Assembly: GCF_052425735.1 (NCBI RefSeq)
Contig: NC_135767.1
Location: 4,836,001-4,900,000, forward strand
Origin: Oculina patagonica
Lineage: Eukaryota
Length of the DNA: 64,000 nucleotides
Direction: 5' to 3'
Shown here: positions 447 through 61,123 of the stretch, one piece after another
How the letters are laid out: each line of letters opens with the position of its first letter
Position numbering within the stretch: position 1 is the first letter of the stretch
The notes under the pieces: generated by a model
Databases searched by the model: none
Seen by the model: the letters and a program-made list of their open reading frames with translations, nothing else
What the model was told of the DNA's origin: nothing
Translations under genes and position numbers: made by a program

Positions 447-3400
447 GCCATCACTCAACCCAGCTCAGGAAGAAAACAGAAAAATGAAGACCGCAGCTCG
501 TCTTCTCCGTTGGGTATCATAGCAGGCGTGACTGTTTCTATCACACTCGTACTGCTGGTTGTTGTTGCTGCTATTTTTATCTATCGACGTCGAAAATCTA
601 GGTAACTATGCATTTTGTACATTTTCCATTAACAGTATATTGTATAAATCCATGTATATTACCATGCAAGAGTCTTTAAACAATCCTAAAATGAAATAAA
701 AATTAAATAGGGAAGGAATAAGTTTTCAAGTGATGTGCAGATTAAAAACGTTTAAGCAGAGTTGCTTTCTCATAATATATCTCTCGAAACGGGTTTTTAA
801 GCCACTTATTTGCTCCCCGGATACAAGCTTTCCCAGTTATAAGTTCACGGAAAAGCCTTTATGAAGTTCTATAAGCCCACACTGAAGTCCAGGGCTTATA
901 ACTGGATTCTACCGTATGCTATGTATTTGGTGCATATCCACGTACATTGAGATTTCGATCAGTTTATCCTTGACTGGAGTTCTTATGTAAGAATATTCCA
1001 GTTTTGTAGAACGATTTTTAATTTTCTTTTTACAAAGTACTAATAACTACATGGATCCATTATTGTTCACAGAAAAGATGCTCATAAAAGTACCTCTGAA
1101 CACACCGACAAGGTAATAAATTATATTTTAAGTGAATACAATTTTATCACGTGGCCAACATCGATGAAAATTTATTGGAACAAAAAGAAGTGTTTACATA
1201 AGAAAAGACTTCAAATCCCACAGGATTGGCTTGGTACATCAACATGGCCACCGTTTGTTGTTTTGGAACACCAATATGGCCACCGTGATGTCACGTGAGC
1301 ATACAATGTATATTTTGAAAACTCTTCGTGGACCAAGAACTGAGAACTGTGTATAATTGCATGAAAAACAAATCTTTAGTTAGTAAACTTGGCTTCGGAC
1401 CGTACTTTGTCTTAGGTTGTCGACTCGAAAGTCCCTAAAATGAAAAAACAACATGCGAGTTTGTTTTAATCCTATGTAATCCTATGTAATCACAAAAAAA
1501 CATAGTTTGTTAAAGGTTTGTCGCTGACTGTGTTTTGATGTTATTTTTTAAGACGTTTCGGCTATTGCTTAAGCCTTCATCAGTTAAAAAATCAAAGCTT
1601 TCACACGCGATTTAAAAATGGCAACACGTTAGCGCGCGCTTTAAAAATAACGGAAAGTTAAAAGGGGTGGGATGATAGCATGGTCGTTCCCAGAGTGCGG
1701 ATCCTTAATGGACAACCAGGCTTCCAAAAAGAGTCGCTTGTGAATCGGTGAGGTAAAATCATATGGTGATTATTTTCATGTACATGACAGGAGATCTTTG
1801 AGTCGTGGTCGAACATGGCAACTACCCTTTTGTGTTCCGCAATCCGGGTCTTTATTGGTCGCTCCGTTTGACCGTAGTATACAAAATTACAGTTGGTGCA
1901 ATTGATTTTGTAAACTACGCCAGATCTTGGGCGGTCAACATCATTTTGAGCCTTTGGGCGCGGAAACAAACATGTTCACAGTTTTTAGCGGTTTGTAGGC
2001 GACTTTGATCTCTTGCTGTCTCAAAATGCGGCCAATCTTTTCATAAATGCCTTGAACATAAGGAAGTACCACGAAGCCATTAGTTGGTAAATCTGCTTGT
2101 GGTTGTGACAGTGATCTCTCACACTTGCTTATAAAGGATGGTGGATAGTTGTTCTCGCGCAACACCGACTTCACTCGTTTTGTTTCTTTTCGTTTTCCTT
2201 CTTGTGTTGAAGGAAAGTTCTTTGCCCTTTGTAGCAGTGTGCAAACTACGGATCTCTTATGACACACAGGGTGATGAGAATTGAAGTCAAGGTATCGGTC
2301 TGTATGTGTTGACTTCCTGTAGACATTCACTTCAATTTGTGTGCCACTCCTTGTTGTGATAGTGTCCAAAAAGGGTAGTCCCTGCTCCGTGGTGTCCTCA
2401 AGTTCAACAGTGAATTGTATGCTGGGATTTATGGAGTTTAGATGTTGATGAAACTCGTTAACATGTTCCTTTTTGAGGCATGCGTGACTATCATCCACGT
2501 AGCGGAACAACCACTTAGGAGGGTGACGAGCTGTGGTGATCGCAATTTCTTTAATCTCCTTCATTACAAGGTCAGCTATAACAGGGCTGATCGGGGAGCC
2601 CATCGCACATCCAAAACAGTAGATGTTATCGTGTTTGAAATAGTTTTGCTTAAGAACAAATTCTAATAGTTTCATGATGTTGCTGATGGACATATTTGTG
2701 CGATCTGCTAGATGTTGATCTTGGTAGAGCCTCTCGTTTGTAATGGTTAGAGCCAGGTTCACAGAAATAGAAGTGAATAAAGACTTGACGTCAAAAGAGA
2801 CCATTATCTCATCACTGGTGACGGACTGTTGGCGGATCTGCAGCGCAAATTCTGAGCTGTTCTTGACTGAAAATCTATTCCTCCGGAGAGGAGATAGAAT
2901 GGAAACCAGGTGCTTGGACACAGCGTATGTCGGGCTACCTATGCTACTGGTGATGGGTCTGAGTGGTCTCTCAGGTTTGTGGATTTTTGGGAGACCATAG
3001 AAAGATGCTGGTGTGGAATTGTTGCAATGTAGCTTTCTGTATAGTTCTGGTCCAATTTGGGATGTTCCGGCATTCTTTTCCTCTCTGATGTTAAGCAAAA
3101 GTTTGTTAAGGTCCCTTTCGACGCTAGTTGTTGGGTGTGACCATGTTTGGTTCGTGTAAAATGTCAAAAATTCTCGCTCCCATCTTCGTGTTTAAAAAAA
3201 TTGCCAAGATCAGCTGTCGATAGCGTCAGATGACCAATTTAGTAATCCAAAAAGCTCCTAAATCCAAGATGAATTTAAAATATAAAAATGGTTTAAACAG
3301 ATCTAAAAATATAAAAGGATACTCTAAATTTTCGATCGCCTTCTGCGGTCTTCTTCAGAGAATGATGGATTTTGCAAGGTTCGCAGAGCCCCCAGGGGGG

Positions 3401-59000: not shown

Positions 59001-61123
59001 GTCTGGAGCTGAAAACAACAAAAACAGACGATTGTATTGACCAGTACTCGCTAGTTGAAGAGAAAGCACGTTATCAAAGTCTTTCCCCTTCACCAGATGG
59101 TGCCATGGAAAGAGGTCTGTATAAACGGCGTTTGTTTATATTCATTCATCATTATTGCCAAAGCCCTAAGTGGGCATAGGGCCGGACATTTTCCCCCCCC
59201 ATGCTGCCCGGGCGCGGGCAGCCCCCCCCCCCTCCCCCCACCCGCCAAACCCAAACCCCCCTTTTTCTCCCCCCCCTTTCCCCCCCTTATATTAGTTATT
59301 ATTAAATGACGGAACAAAGAAAAATGGATTGGTGATTTACCTTTAAAGGGACTATGTCACGGATTTTACCAGATTTTTGAACAGCCAAAATTTATATTTG
59401 TGTCGCAGGAAACGTAAAAATAATAATCCATTTTTATTAAAATTGTGATATTAGATCACTGAAACTGTTACAAGCATCTTTGGCTGCGGATGGCTCGGAC
59501 GGAAACGGATTGCAACTTGAAAAAGTAAGGCTTACGTTTTCAAGTTGTTTCCGCGCTTCTTAAAAAAAAATCGATATTTATAGCCGTAGCTTGATTTCTA
59601 TCCGCAAATTAAGGTTATATATTCCTTAAGATGTTCAAAGATAATGTTTTTTATGGGTTATTTTGCCCACCACTAATTTCAGAACAGTTTAGACCAAAAA
59701 TCTGCGAAATCCCTGTGACATAGCTCCTTTGAGGTACCTATCTATACTGTTAGTCTGCAGAACACATAGCTTAAATTTGTCGGAATTATTTAAGTATTTA
59801 GACACAAACATGGAGGAGCTTAATTTCAATACCCAGTCAGTCAGTCGCTCCCCAGACATTACCATGACTTTAAATGTTACTAATTGTTATGTAATTGTTT
59901 ATTTTTATAGTAGTTACGATCCAATGTAGTATATTTAACAATAGCAGTAATTATTATCAGTATCATTATTTAGAAATATATTAGTATCAGTATTTAGTAT
60001 AAATATTTAGTTTAATACACGACCCCACAAGCATTGTGCTTAAAACCCTTATCGTGTTTAAATAAAGGATATCATGATGATAAAAAACAAGCTTTTTTAC
60101 CGAAATAAGTTTGTGGATTCGACCAGTACTAGTACTAGTGTCATAAGTTAGCTGCAAAACGGGGCTCGTTCGGTGGCCGTATCAGTACCCCTCCCTAGAG
60201 AGTCGTGCGGGAAAATAATGCCATAGAAGAATCAGTATTTAAGAAGAAAATGGAGAAAGTAATTGTTTTATATTATAGTAATGGACAAAAATAACGAAAC
60301 CCAAGATCTACTAAAATAAACAGATAGTACCAAACACACTTAGTTAACTCCTGCATGTGTTCCAAATGGTACATGTAACAAAACCATTCTGTCTTGGTAG
60401 CGTAGGCCCAGAAAGCTGAAAATAGTCGTTATTGATACGATTGCATTAAAACATGTTGCAGGGGTGTACGTGTCGCGATACAAGGTACCTGAAACTACTT
60501 TGGAAACCAACAATTGCTATACTCTTCCCGAGGGACAAGACCCGTGCAGGCCCGTTGATGGGCCAAAAGTGAAGCCAGACTGTGATGAGTACGATTATGC
60601 ACAGTCCAGTCTAGTGGTGCGCAAAAATGTGCTCAAGTTCAGTTTCGCTGCGTCAAACGAGAAGGACCCTAACACACCAGAAGATAATGTTCCTTTTTAC
60701 CATGTACTTGATGGGGAAGACAGAGGCCTTCAAATTAAGGAGTCTAGCGAAGACGATTGTGGAAAACCCGATGAAGGAGCCCCTTATTATCGAGTACTCG
60801 AGGGACCCAATTCTTTGGACCCCCCAGATAACACCCATGAACAAGACCATGAAGGGGCTCATAATGAAACTAAGGAACAAGACCCTTAGTACCATATTCT
60901 CGAGGGATCGAGAGATGACGAGCAAAACAGTCCCAACGAAGTAGCTCACGAGGAAAAAGCTTATTATTATGCGGTAAACGGACCTACTAGTTCTTCAGGA
61001 AATCAAGATAACAGTGGTTACAAAGATCTTCAATCAGATGGACGCGTATCCACAGGTTACCAAACGCTTCACAAATATGCTTATGTAACTTGCGGAGATT
61101 CTGAAGTCAGTCGTAACAAGTAA
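53063..61123 (+). CDS. Receptor paralog E (most divergent), 7 exons, internal in-frame TAG at 60887-60889
   Basis: Exons 53063-53387, 55617-55855, 56130-56247, 56837-57012 (poly-Thr stalk), 57415-57575 (TM), 58978-59114 (donor less certain) and 60462-60889/61123. Cys pattern and intron phases match B-D. About 527 aa to the TAG; the frame stays open a further 77 codons. Confidence 0.78.
53474..53770 (+). mobile_element. tRNA-derived SINE (second family)
   Basis: Same head and body as 44384-44676; decayed copies at ~57068-57350 and ~12355-12540. Confidence 0.82.
53974..55335. mobile_element. Non-autonomous DNA transposon with TGT...ACA termini and 4-bp TSD (Ginger-like)
   Basis: Imperfect TIR TGT(G/T)G(C/T)GTAAAAAAACGG; CAAA duplicated at 53970-53973 and 55336-55339; subterminal arrays of the palindrome GTAAAAAAGCWGCTTTTTTAC. 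Confidence 0.65.
58199..58258. mobile_element. 60-bp hairpin mini-MITE (TAG...CTA)
   Basis: 27-bp perfect inverted arms; CAAGTATT target duplication, the right copy split by the next element. Confidence 0.7.
58265..58842. mobile_element. Tc1/mariner-type MITE
   Basis: TA-CAGTCAACTCTCT...AGAGAGTTGACTG-TA with subterminal GTGTCCGTCTTA repeats; related decayed copies at ~30518-30900. Confidence 0.8.

Follow-up and report, generated by a model that had tools for sequence, protein, structure and literature searches.

A tandem array of five paralogs

We analyzed a window of 64,000 nucleotides of the Oculina patagonica genome (contig NC_135767.1, positions 4,836,001 to 4,900,000), which has a G+C content of 34-47% and is devoid of N runs. 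The all-against-all comparison of the open frames of the + strand revealed a repeated series of exons belonging to five paralogous genes, named here A to E, all on this strand and within positions 447-61123 (Table 1). Genes A, B, and C are close to each other, with 71-92% identity in exon DNA and introns that can also be aligned, and the relationship of D and E to them is old (25-34% protein identity to B). Complete open models, flanked by AG/GT at all internal junctions, were obtained for B, C, D, and E, and a model of the 3' half for A; the genes have 7 to 10 coding exons. The copies are in different states: A is partial, B is intact, the tail is frameshifted in C and expanded in D, and an in-frame TAG interrupts E. 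As detailed below, these genes form part of a tandem array whose family, restricted to Anthozoa, is expressed and encodes receptor-like proteins that pass the membrane once, lack a catalytic domain, and have a new ectodomain; we regard this conclusion as secure.

The intron phases are 1,0,1,0,(0,)0,2,0,1 in B and C, 1,0,1,0,2,0,1 in D, and 1,0,1,0,2,1 in E. In these four genes a cysteine codon is split between exon 3, whose last base is T, and exon 4, whose first bases are GT (starting at 12228 in B, 26052 in C, 42187 in D, and 56837 in E). An earlier note on this DNA, made from its letters alone, had proposed a cluster of five same-strand paralogs sharing intron phases and this split codon. 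The open-frame comparison confirmed the first of these claims and the B-E gene models the other two, the junction in B (12125>12228) being backed by RNA contigs. The same 23.46-Mb contig holds at least three further named Oculina paralogs (G032956, G032959, and LOC144628844); LOC144628679 may be a second model of one of these.

The spliced form of B is transcribed. We compared the region 12000-17999 with the contigs of four public RNA runs, at a likeness of at least 90%, and six GT..AG junctions were confirmed, each in up to three runs: 12125>12228, 12313>12892, 12933/6>13203/6, 13248/53>14413/8, 14566/9>15023/6, and 15063/5>17471/3. The joints came from runs labelled as three organisms, among which alleles, paralogs, and sister species are not separable. 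The seventh junction is represented by a loose contig end at 17566, running on into the last exon. A model of B built from homology and splice consensus had missed three small exons (12228-12313, 12892-12936, and 15026-15065) and contained phase conflicts at the transmembrane exon; it was overruled by the RNA joints. In all four runs, the intronic stretches 12400-12600 and 13400-14400 of B showed a contig depth of 300-900 with many loose ends and are probably transcribed repeats outside the gene.

These models correct the public ones, in which A, a single gene, is split in two and neither model of B is complete. The two parts of A are ACROYT_G032963 (P0151), with the ectodomain and the transmembrane part plus a false last exon, and G032964 (P0173), with the tail; the ectodomain exons of A lie upstream of the window and were found in P0151. 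Gene B is annotated twice, each time partially (P0156 and P0157): G032965 lacks exons 2-3, and RefSeq LOC144628300 X2 begins in exon 2, lacks exon 1, and keeps intron sequence after exon 2. The public protein P0001, the counterpart of C, starts 11 codons upstream of our model. Gene D aligns to Desmophyllum P0026 and Stylophora P0207, and E aligns over its full length, also past its stop, to Stylophora P0208 (LOC111344658).

Table 1. Genes, exons, and tail features of the array, in positions of the window
Feature	Position	Strand	Basis or remark
Gene A, 3' half	447..5145	+	AG/GT sites and open frame; exons 87-92% identical to B
A exons	447-601 (juxtamembrane and transmembrane), 1073-1112, 3879-3972, 4496-5145 (tail, stop)	+	
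Gene B, intact, 628 aa, 10 coding exons	7729..19005	+	RNA joints and open translation
B exons 1-5	7729-8059, 11062-11303, 12005-12125, 12228-12313, 12892-12936	+	
B exons 6-10	13206-13253, 14418-14569 (transmembrane), 15026-15065, 17473-17566, 18278-19005	+	
81-nt repeat, 2.3 copies, B tail	18562..18750	+	Tandem Repeats Finder
Gene C, 532 aa from conserved ATG	21385..32608	+	matches P0001 = ACROYT_G032966 exon for exon
C exons 1-5	21385-21718, 24719-24957, 25580-25700, 26052-26137, 27434-27490	+	
C exons 6-9	29269-29420 (transmembrane), 29783-29822, 31521-31614, 32133-32608	+	
C tail remnant	32603..32789	+	last three Tyr motifs, including IPVYAVVNKKKK, readable out of frame to 32789
Gene D, 765 aa	35752..47654	+	homology- and phase-guided model, all AG/GT, open frame
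D exons	35752-36106, 37506-37747, 41094-41232, 42187-42413, 44123-44277 (transmembrane), 45092-45137, 45963-46053, 46612-47654	+	
93-nt tandem repeat, 6.9 copies, 96% matches, D tail	46922..47572	+	Tandem Repeats Finder
Gene E, frame interrupted at codon 528	53063..61123	+	model with AG/GT sites
E exons	53063-53387, 55617-55855, 56130-56247, 56837-57012, 57415-57575 (transmembrane), 58978-59114, 60462-61123	+	
In-frame TAG, E tail	60887..60889	+	between EQDP and YHILEG

Protein layout and predicted ectodomain fold

The protein encoded by B consists of a signal peptide (residues 1 to ~20), a Cys-rich head (~21-232), a Ser/Thr/Pro stalk (233 to ~310), and a transmembrane helix (~313-335), followed by RRRKSR and a 293-residue tail. 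This layout is common to the paralogs, which show a signal peptide, a Cys-rich ectodomain of ~210 residues, a stalk, one transmembrane helix, and an acidic, Tyr-rich tail. In an alignment of 25 sequences, including members from other species, the ectodomain carried the signature I.R..D.F..P.S.C...C.C..T...W.C..N..R..L.C..F..E..L..L...C...SWY..C.G...Y..V...GR.I.L.I.C...CLLFKL.G..C. Just outside the membrane (14430-14480), the stretch P-S-S-G-[RK]-[RK]-Q-K-N-[ED]-D-x-S-S-S is among the best conserved of the A/B/C type across species and may serve for cleavage by a sheddase or for a glycosaminoglycan.

None of the single exons, full-length members, or 25 aligned sequences matched a Pfam family above its cutoff, and no Ig-family Pfam match was found in any of them at E ≤ 1. 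The sub-cutoff matches to IL2, Clusterin, KIAA1549, Syndecan, Stevor, and others were discarded as noise from transmembrane or low-complexity segments. The NCBIfam search returned only noise, and the profile search of PDB sequences gave no relative at E < 0.01.

The AlphaFold2 model of the ectodomain, built from the 25-row alignment, comprises two mostly beta domains, with a mean per-residue confidence (pLDDT) of 80.7 and a global one (pTM) of 0.80. Against solved structures, the whole ectodomain gave nothing at E = 1e−3 with Foldseek and nothing above Z = 5 with VIA; the 6-Cys protein Pf12p and PD-1 were rejected as relatives of the whole ectodomain (E ≥ 5e−3, template modelling score [TM-score] < 0.3 by query). 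The structural neighbours in AlphaFold DB are unnamed proteins. Modelled alone, the membrane-proximal domain 2 reached a pLDDT of 88, and its top Foldseek matches were mostly Ig V/I-set domains, including those of PD-1, MyBP-C, nanobodies, and the TCR V domain (E ≥ 1.2e−3, TM-score of 0.31-0.49, compared with 0.5 as the mark of an Ig fold). With VIA it matched cadherin, SusE-like, and S-layer sandwiches at Z ≤ 6.5, the best being cadherin and SusE-like domains, under the background of 7-8 stated for the tool. Domain 1 had no recognisable relative and no Ig-like match. The ESM Atlas, searched by shape and by features, yielded nothing beyond weak matches of Ig-like or bacterial Ig type and EGF and fibulin scores at chance level. 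Domain 2 is therefore predicted, at the level of the structural model, to be a divergent Ig-like or cadherin-like beta sandwich that cannot be assigned to a family.

These results bear on most of what the earlier note had said of the proteins. The Cys signature recurs in members from other species, and the mucin-like stalk, the single transmembrane segment, and the acidic Tyr-motif tail are all present in the gene models; the absence of an enzyme domain holds for the exons, full-length members, and aligned sequences at the Pfam cutoffs. The statement that the ectodomain has no Ig-like domain stands for sequence profiles and has to be qualified for structure, since domain 2 is predicted as an Ig-like or cadherin-like sandwich, although it fails every family-level test. 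Pfam, PDB profile, and structure searches returned no well-characterised family matching the ectodomain.

Two named proteins weakly resemble the ectodomain. In the Swiss-Prot models, the best named match was the Acropora millepora skeletal-matrix protein USOMP-3 (B8RJM0), aligned over both predicted domains (residues 25-230) with an E value of 2.5e−3, a probability of 1.00, a TM-score of 0.42, and 15% identity. USOMP-3 starts with a signal peptide (1-28) and has a transmembrane helix at 275-297, beyond which lies its cytoplasmic part (PMC4043741); from cleaned skeleton, the transmembrane skeletal-matrix proteins, USOMP-3 included, were recovered only as their extracellular parts (PMC3748352), and USOMP-3 homologs have been reported across Anthozoa (10.1101/594242). 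The family thus shares with USOMP-3 a signal peptide, an ectodomain of ~200 residues, a transmembrane segment near residue 275, and the anthozoan range, but the likeness is weak and structural only. The other protein is Shavenoid, the N-terminal domain of whose isoform B (PF23328) had sub-threshold matches in 6 of the 25 ectodomain sequences and exon pieces (14.6-18.5 bits); the best of them (P0101, 18.5 bits, E = 0.0024) did not reach the gathering cutoff of 24.4 bits. The matches of P0101, P0125, and the exon-1 piece of D cover the same part of exon 1 (E of 0.0024-0.04), and the first 200 residues of the arthropod protein A0A7R8HDC6 align to the ectodomain model with a TM-score of 0.41. However, Shavenoid is a large insect hair-morphogenesis protein with another overall layout, and is at most a candidate homolog.

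The resemblance to USOMP-3 raises the possibility that these proteins are receptors for cell-matrix or cell-skeleton contact, whose heads would bind the matrix or the mineralising front and could be shed, and whose tails would link to tyrosine-kinase signalling and the cytoskeleton. The common layout and range are consistent with this, as are the mucin-like stalk and the basic G[RK]KQK that is conserved just outside the membrane in all members. On the other hand, the link consists of a weak fold match and a layout, USOMP-3 was not retrieved in the sequence searches of the family (a query with an Actinia member gave only its self match), and the family is also expanded in non-calcifying anemones. 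We consider such a contact role possible, if unlikely.

Tyrosine motifs of the predicted cytoplasmic tails

The tails are acidic, 200-400 residues long, and rich in Yxx[LIVM] motifs (7 in A, 8 in B, 6 in C, 14 in D, and 10 in E). Among 26 tails, tyrosine represented 4-8% of the residues and aspartate plus glutamate 12-24%, with only 1-3% of phenylalanine plus tryptophan in nearly all of them; the exception was one anemone member with 3.9% tyrosine versus 4% phenylalanine plus tryptophan. The consensus around the tyrosine, [ED][ED]x-P-V-Y-N-V-L-E-E, was the same in the genes of the window (89 sites) and in other species (291 sites), and its core P-V-Y-N-V-L-E is kept from Exaiptasia (EPVYNVLEGP) to stony corals (DPVYNVLEGP in Orbicella). 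When eight tails of the A/B/C type, from at least four species, were aligned, tyrosine was the best-conserved residue class (mean identity of 0.80, with 7 of the 15 columns near-invariant), leucine came second, and serine, threonine, alanine, and aspartate drifted.

In all types, the last exon opens with a membrane-proximal IYxxxY[DSQK][VAL]P, which is a YxxP motif, followed by 3 to 8 copies of the module [DE]-x-P-[VE]-Y-N-[VIT]-L-E-E. The A/B/C type ends in IPVYAVVNKKKK, an ending also kept by other Oculina paralogs and by P0155, from a different species. This end resembles EPIYA-K-V-N-K-K-K, and with it the EPIYA-type motifs of CagA and mammalian Pragmin that bind Csk or SHP2; the likeness is one of short motifs only, and IPVYAVVNKKKK is frameshifted out in C and absent in D and E. 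The tails of A, B, and C contain no canonical immunoreceptor tyrosine-based inhibitory motif (ITIM, [SIVL]xYxx[ILV]) or activation motif (ITAM, Yxx[LI]x6-12Yxx[LI]). One ITIM-like LVYNIV is present in D; in E, an ITIM-like site and an ITAM-like pair occur once each, downstream of the in-frame TAG, and Stylophora keeps an equivalent of this pair. YxN, NPxY, and PPxY motifs were absent or rare in the tails.

The best explanation, which we consider probable, is that the array encodes a family of non-catalytic tyrosine-phosphorylated receptors or transmembrane scaffolds. The features of this class, a single transmembrane pass, no catalytic domain, and conserved cytoplasmic tyrosine motifs, were all found, and the reading builds on the selective enrichment of tyrosine and its conservation in a specific context, together with known kinase and SH2 preferences and the phosphotyrosine toolkit of cnidarians. 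An aliphatic residue at −1 and acidic residues upstream suit kinases of the Src/Abl class, SH2 ligand classes include YxxP and Yxx[LV], and Src, Csk, and many SH2 proteins are present in cnidarians. Accordingly, the suggestion in the earlier note that the proteins signal through SH2 proteins agrees with tails that, from their sequence, look built for phosphotyrosine and SH2-type docking.

We infer the membrane topology, glycosylation, phosphorylation, and SH2 docking from these features. Each protein would be a type I single-pass glycoprotein, with two disulfide-rich, mostly beta domains as a head presented on the Ser/Thr/Pro stalk, which is probably O-glycosylated, and a tail that is probably disordered. 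Upon clustering of the heads or ligand binding, a cytoplasmic Src-type kinase would phosphorylate the tail tyrosines, and the phosphorylated array would recruit several SH2 or PTB proteins at once. Similar type I single-pass proteins with no enzyme domain and a disordered, acidic Tyr-motif tail are SIRP-alpha, PECAM-1, PZR, DCBLD1/2 (with YxxP arrays), and PEAR1/MEGF10/Draper. By analogy, the logic presumed here is that of those vertebrate receptors and scaffolds, i.e., clustering, Src-type phosphorylation, and multivalent SH2 docking. Unlike them, the ectodomain has no Ig, EGF, CUB, or discoidin Pfam match, and the main motif P-V-Y-N-V-L-E is neither ITIM, ITAM, YxN, nor YxxP.

Several points weigh against this mechanism. 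YNVL was not accepted as a Grb2 (YxN) site, since its asparagine is at +1 rather than +2, the proline at −2 of the main motif rules out an ITIM, and the motifs are spaced by 27-31 residues, which is not the spacing of an ITAM. As a consequence, no specific reader domain can be named. The fold was predicted from a shallow alignment of 22-25 sequences, the RNA junctions cover B alone, and part of the array may be decaying, with C and E truncated in this assembly. Moreover, Yxx-hydrophobic motifs can also act as endocytic signals.

This last point leads to the reading of the family as endocytic or phagocytic cargo receptors, in which the motifs would be AP-2-type sorting signals and not phosphorylation sites. 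The tails offer 6 to 14 Yxx[LIVM] motifs each, and in combining a single pass with a mucin stalk the proteins resemble certain receptors of the scavenger and endocytic kinds. Nevertheless, known receptors need only one or two sorting signals, and the proline at −2, valine at −1, asparagine at +1, and glutamates at +4/+5 are also conserved, beyond the minimal YxxPhi rule, suggesting a more specific reader. The acidic context, the YxxP motif, and YAVV also fit the kinase and SH2 logic better. Cargo reception is thus very unlikely in our view, and less plausible than a role in matrix or skeleton contact.

Taxonomic range of the family

The exon-1 profile of B-E retrieved 160 representative clusters at E ≤ 1e−3 among 1.84 billion proteins, most of them exon-sized fragments. 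Two of its matches (P0055 and P0146) were discarded as repetitive, unrelated proteins. The full-length members share the signal peptide, a Cys pattern ending in CLLFK[LIVM]xGxxxC, the stalk, the transmembrane helix, and the Tyr-rich tail. Named members come from Oculina, Desmophyllum, Pocillopora, Stylophora, Acropora, Montipora, Orbicella, Porites, Actinia, and Exaiptasia, and every one of them is annotated as "hypothetical" or "uncharacterized"; we found no literature on the motif of the family or on its LOC genes. The full-length proteins of other species are encoded on Logan contigs of 1.7-2.9 kb, shorter than the 8-12 kb spanned by the genes in Oculina, which indicates processed transcripts. 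The description of an uncharacterised cnidarian receptor-like family in the earlier note is thus supported and can be refined: the family is anthozoan, non-catalytic, single-pass, tandem, transcribed and spliced, and the members retrieved are annotated as uncharacterised.

The maximum-likelihood tree of the ectodomain contained several subfamilies. A, B, and C fell in one subfamily with genes of Desmophyllum, Pocillopora, and Stylophora, those of Acropora and Montipora lying further out. In this tree, A, B, and C look like lineage-specific duplicates, for which no single gene of another species stands as sister. Two Stylophora genes, which have consecutive numbers on one contig, pair with D and E, respectively; in Desmophyllum, a D-like gene lies 4.4 kb downstream of a B-like gene. 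Four same-strand copies with the same three ectodomain exons were found within 24 kb of the Actinia tenebrosa contig WAHB01001408.1 (750-24041), with exon boundaries that match those of Oculina residue for residue. The tandem arrangement and the exon structure are therefore older than the anemone-coral split. By these sequence comparisons, the family is real and old.

Remodelling, damage, and selection

The tails and stalks have been remodelled by repeats and exon duplication. The 93-nt unit in the D tail encodes G-PEYNVLEEPYRETSEEPHQHD..DLTPD and gives seven PEYNVL motifs, and the 81-nt repeat in the B tail corresponds to the module PVYNxLEEPY(A/E)EGSEGPAWYGSVPV(D/E)G. Exon 5 of B (12892-12936), which is used in RNA, duplicates the 3' part of exon 6 (13206-13253), both having the end ..PTQ|GTACGA. 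It has no counterpart in C, showing that stalk length varies through exon duplication.

Two tails are interrupted. The alignment of the B and C tail DNA revealed a 14-nt deletion in C (18799-18812 of B), which causes a frameshift and a TGA at 32606-32608; the out-of-frame remainder of the tail is covered by the open segment s32322_32786. At the position of the TAG of E, which may represent an allele, a pseudogene, or an assembly error, the Stylophora protein has a tyrosine (..DTYYHILEP..), and the alignment runs on for 77 codons. These hold YHIL, YYYAV, and the ITAM-like YKDL-x9-YQTL.

The ratios of nonsynonymous to synonymous substitutions (dN/dS) between B and C were 0.67 in the ectodomain (0.92 in exon 1, 0.50 in exon 2, and 0.70 in exon 3), 0.55 in the tail, 0.30 in the stalk, and 0.27 in the transmembrane and juxtamembrane part. 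The excess of replacements between B and C is real but extends beyond the ectodomain. The synonymous divergence was uneven: 0.71 in exon 2 (11062-11303 versus 24719-24957), 0.11-0.24 in exon 1, exon 3, and the tail, and 0.35-0.37 in the stalk and transmembrane part. This suggests a mosaic history, for example one in which gene conversion affected the other exons or paralogs swapped exon 2. Percent identity by region gave no clear pattern of a variable head and a constant tail.

The earlier note had interpreted the cluster as candidate immune or allorecognition receptors, in comparison with KIR/LILR/SIRP and the Hydractinia Alr complex. On this reading, variable heads would sense non-self or conspecific alleles and tails would activate or inhibit. 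Some observations agree with it: the tandem same-strand cluster with its lineage-specific duplicates A, B, and C and at least three more paralogs on the same contig; the truncation of 2 of the 5 genes of the window (C and E), which gives the array a birth-and-death look; a dN/dS that is higher in the ectodomain, above all in exon 1, than in the stalk, transmembrane, and juxtamembrane parts; and the ITAM-like YxxL-x9-YxxL of the E type, also found in Stylophora. Yet dN/dS nowhere exceeds 1, and the tail is as diverged as the ectodomain. A-C lack canonical ITIM and ITAM, and no Ig or other recognition-family domain was found at threshold. Moreover, the D and E types have stable counterparts on one Stylophora contig and the B-D order is kept in Desmophyllum, which is not the rapid turnover expected for a histocompatibility locus.

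The Hydractinia Alr complex is a cnidarian tandem cluster of single-pass proteins with Tyr-motif tails and beta-sandwich ectodomains that are hard to recognise by sequence (10.1101/2022.03.04.482883). The array of Oculina is likewise a tandem cluster of single-pass proteins with Tyr-motif tails and a predicted beta sandwich, but no link to Alr was found in sequence or at the level of fold family (domain 2 matches Ig domains at a TM-score of 0.3-0.5 and has Z ≤ 6.5), and the array belongs to an anthozoan family whose D and E types have stable counterparts across coral species. The support for an immune or allorecognition role is thus circumstantial, coming from the clustering, the lineage-specific copies, the truncated members, and a dN/dS that is raised yet below neutrality. 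We regard such a role as speculation and as distinctly unlikely, the label of the earlier note not being upheld by these data; contact with the matrix or skeleton is no less plausible a role.

The window also contains remains of retrotransposons on the minus strand. A reverse transcriptase fragment lies at 1658-3167, inside an intron of A, and a LINE-like element with an endonuclease and a reverse transcriptase in two long open reading frames occupies 48437-51282, between D and E, where the local G+C content is 46-47%. An open reading frame of 150 codons with an ATG start (39329-39781, minus strand) is antisense within the intron between exons 2 and 3 of D and had no Pfam match at E ≤ 1e−3.

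Implications for anthozoan biology

To our knowledge, very few receptors acting at the cell surface upstream of tyrosine-kinase and SH2 signalling have been described for corals and sea anemones, and the molecules for tissue contact, symbiont handling, and skeleton contact are largely unknown in these animals. The family described here occurs widely in Anthozoa, is expressed and locally expanded, and has no name in any of the public records examined. In a broader scenario, which we hold to be unlikely, it would be an anthozoan-wide family combining an undescribed two-domain ectodomain with a ladder of P-V-pY-N-V-L-E motifs, a conserved YxxP, and a Csk-type YAVV, i.e., independent pre-bilaterian multi-SH2 docking receptors. 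Their paralogs would serve the recognition of conspecifics, microbes, or symbionts or the contact with the skeleton, with USOMP-3 as a member, and the arrays would feed lineage-specific repertoires.

The short and strongly conserved peptide motif of the tails is directly testable against anthozoan SH2 domains, and the ectodomain could be used for ligand searches once expressed. If the link to USOMP-3 is true, a skeletal-matrix protein would be tied to an intracellular signalling tail, which would bear on how calicoblastic cells sense and steer the mineral front via membrane proteins.

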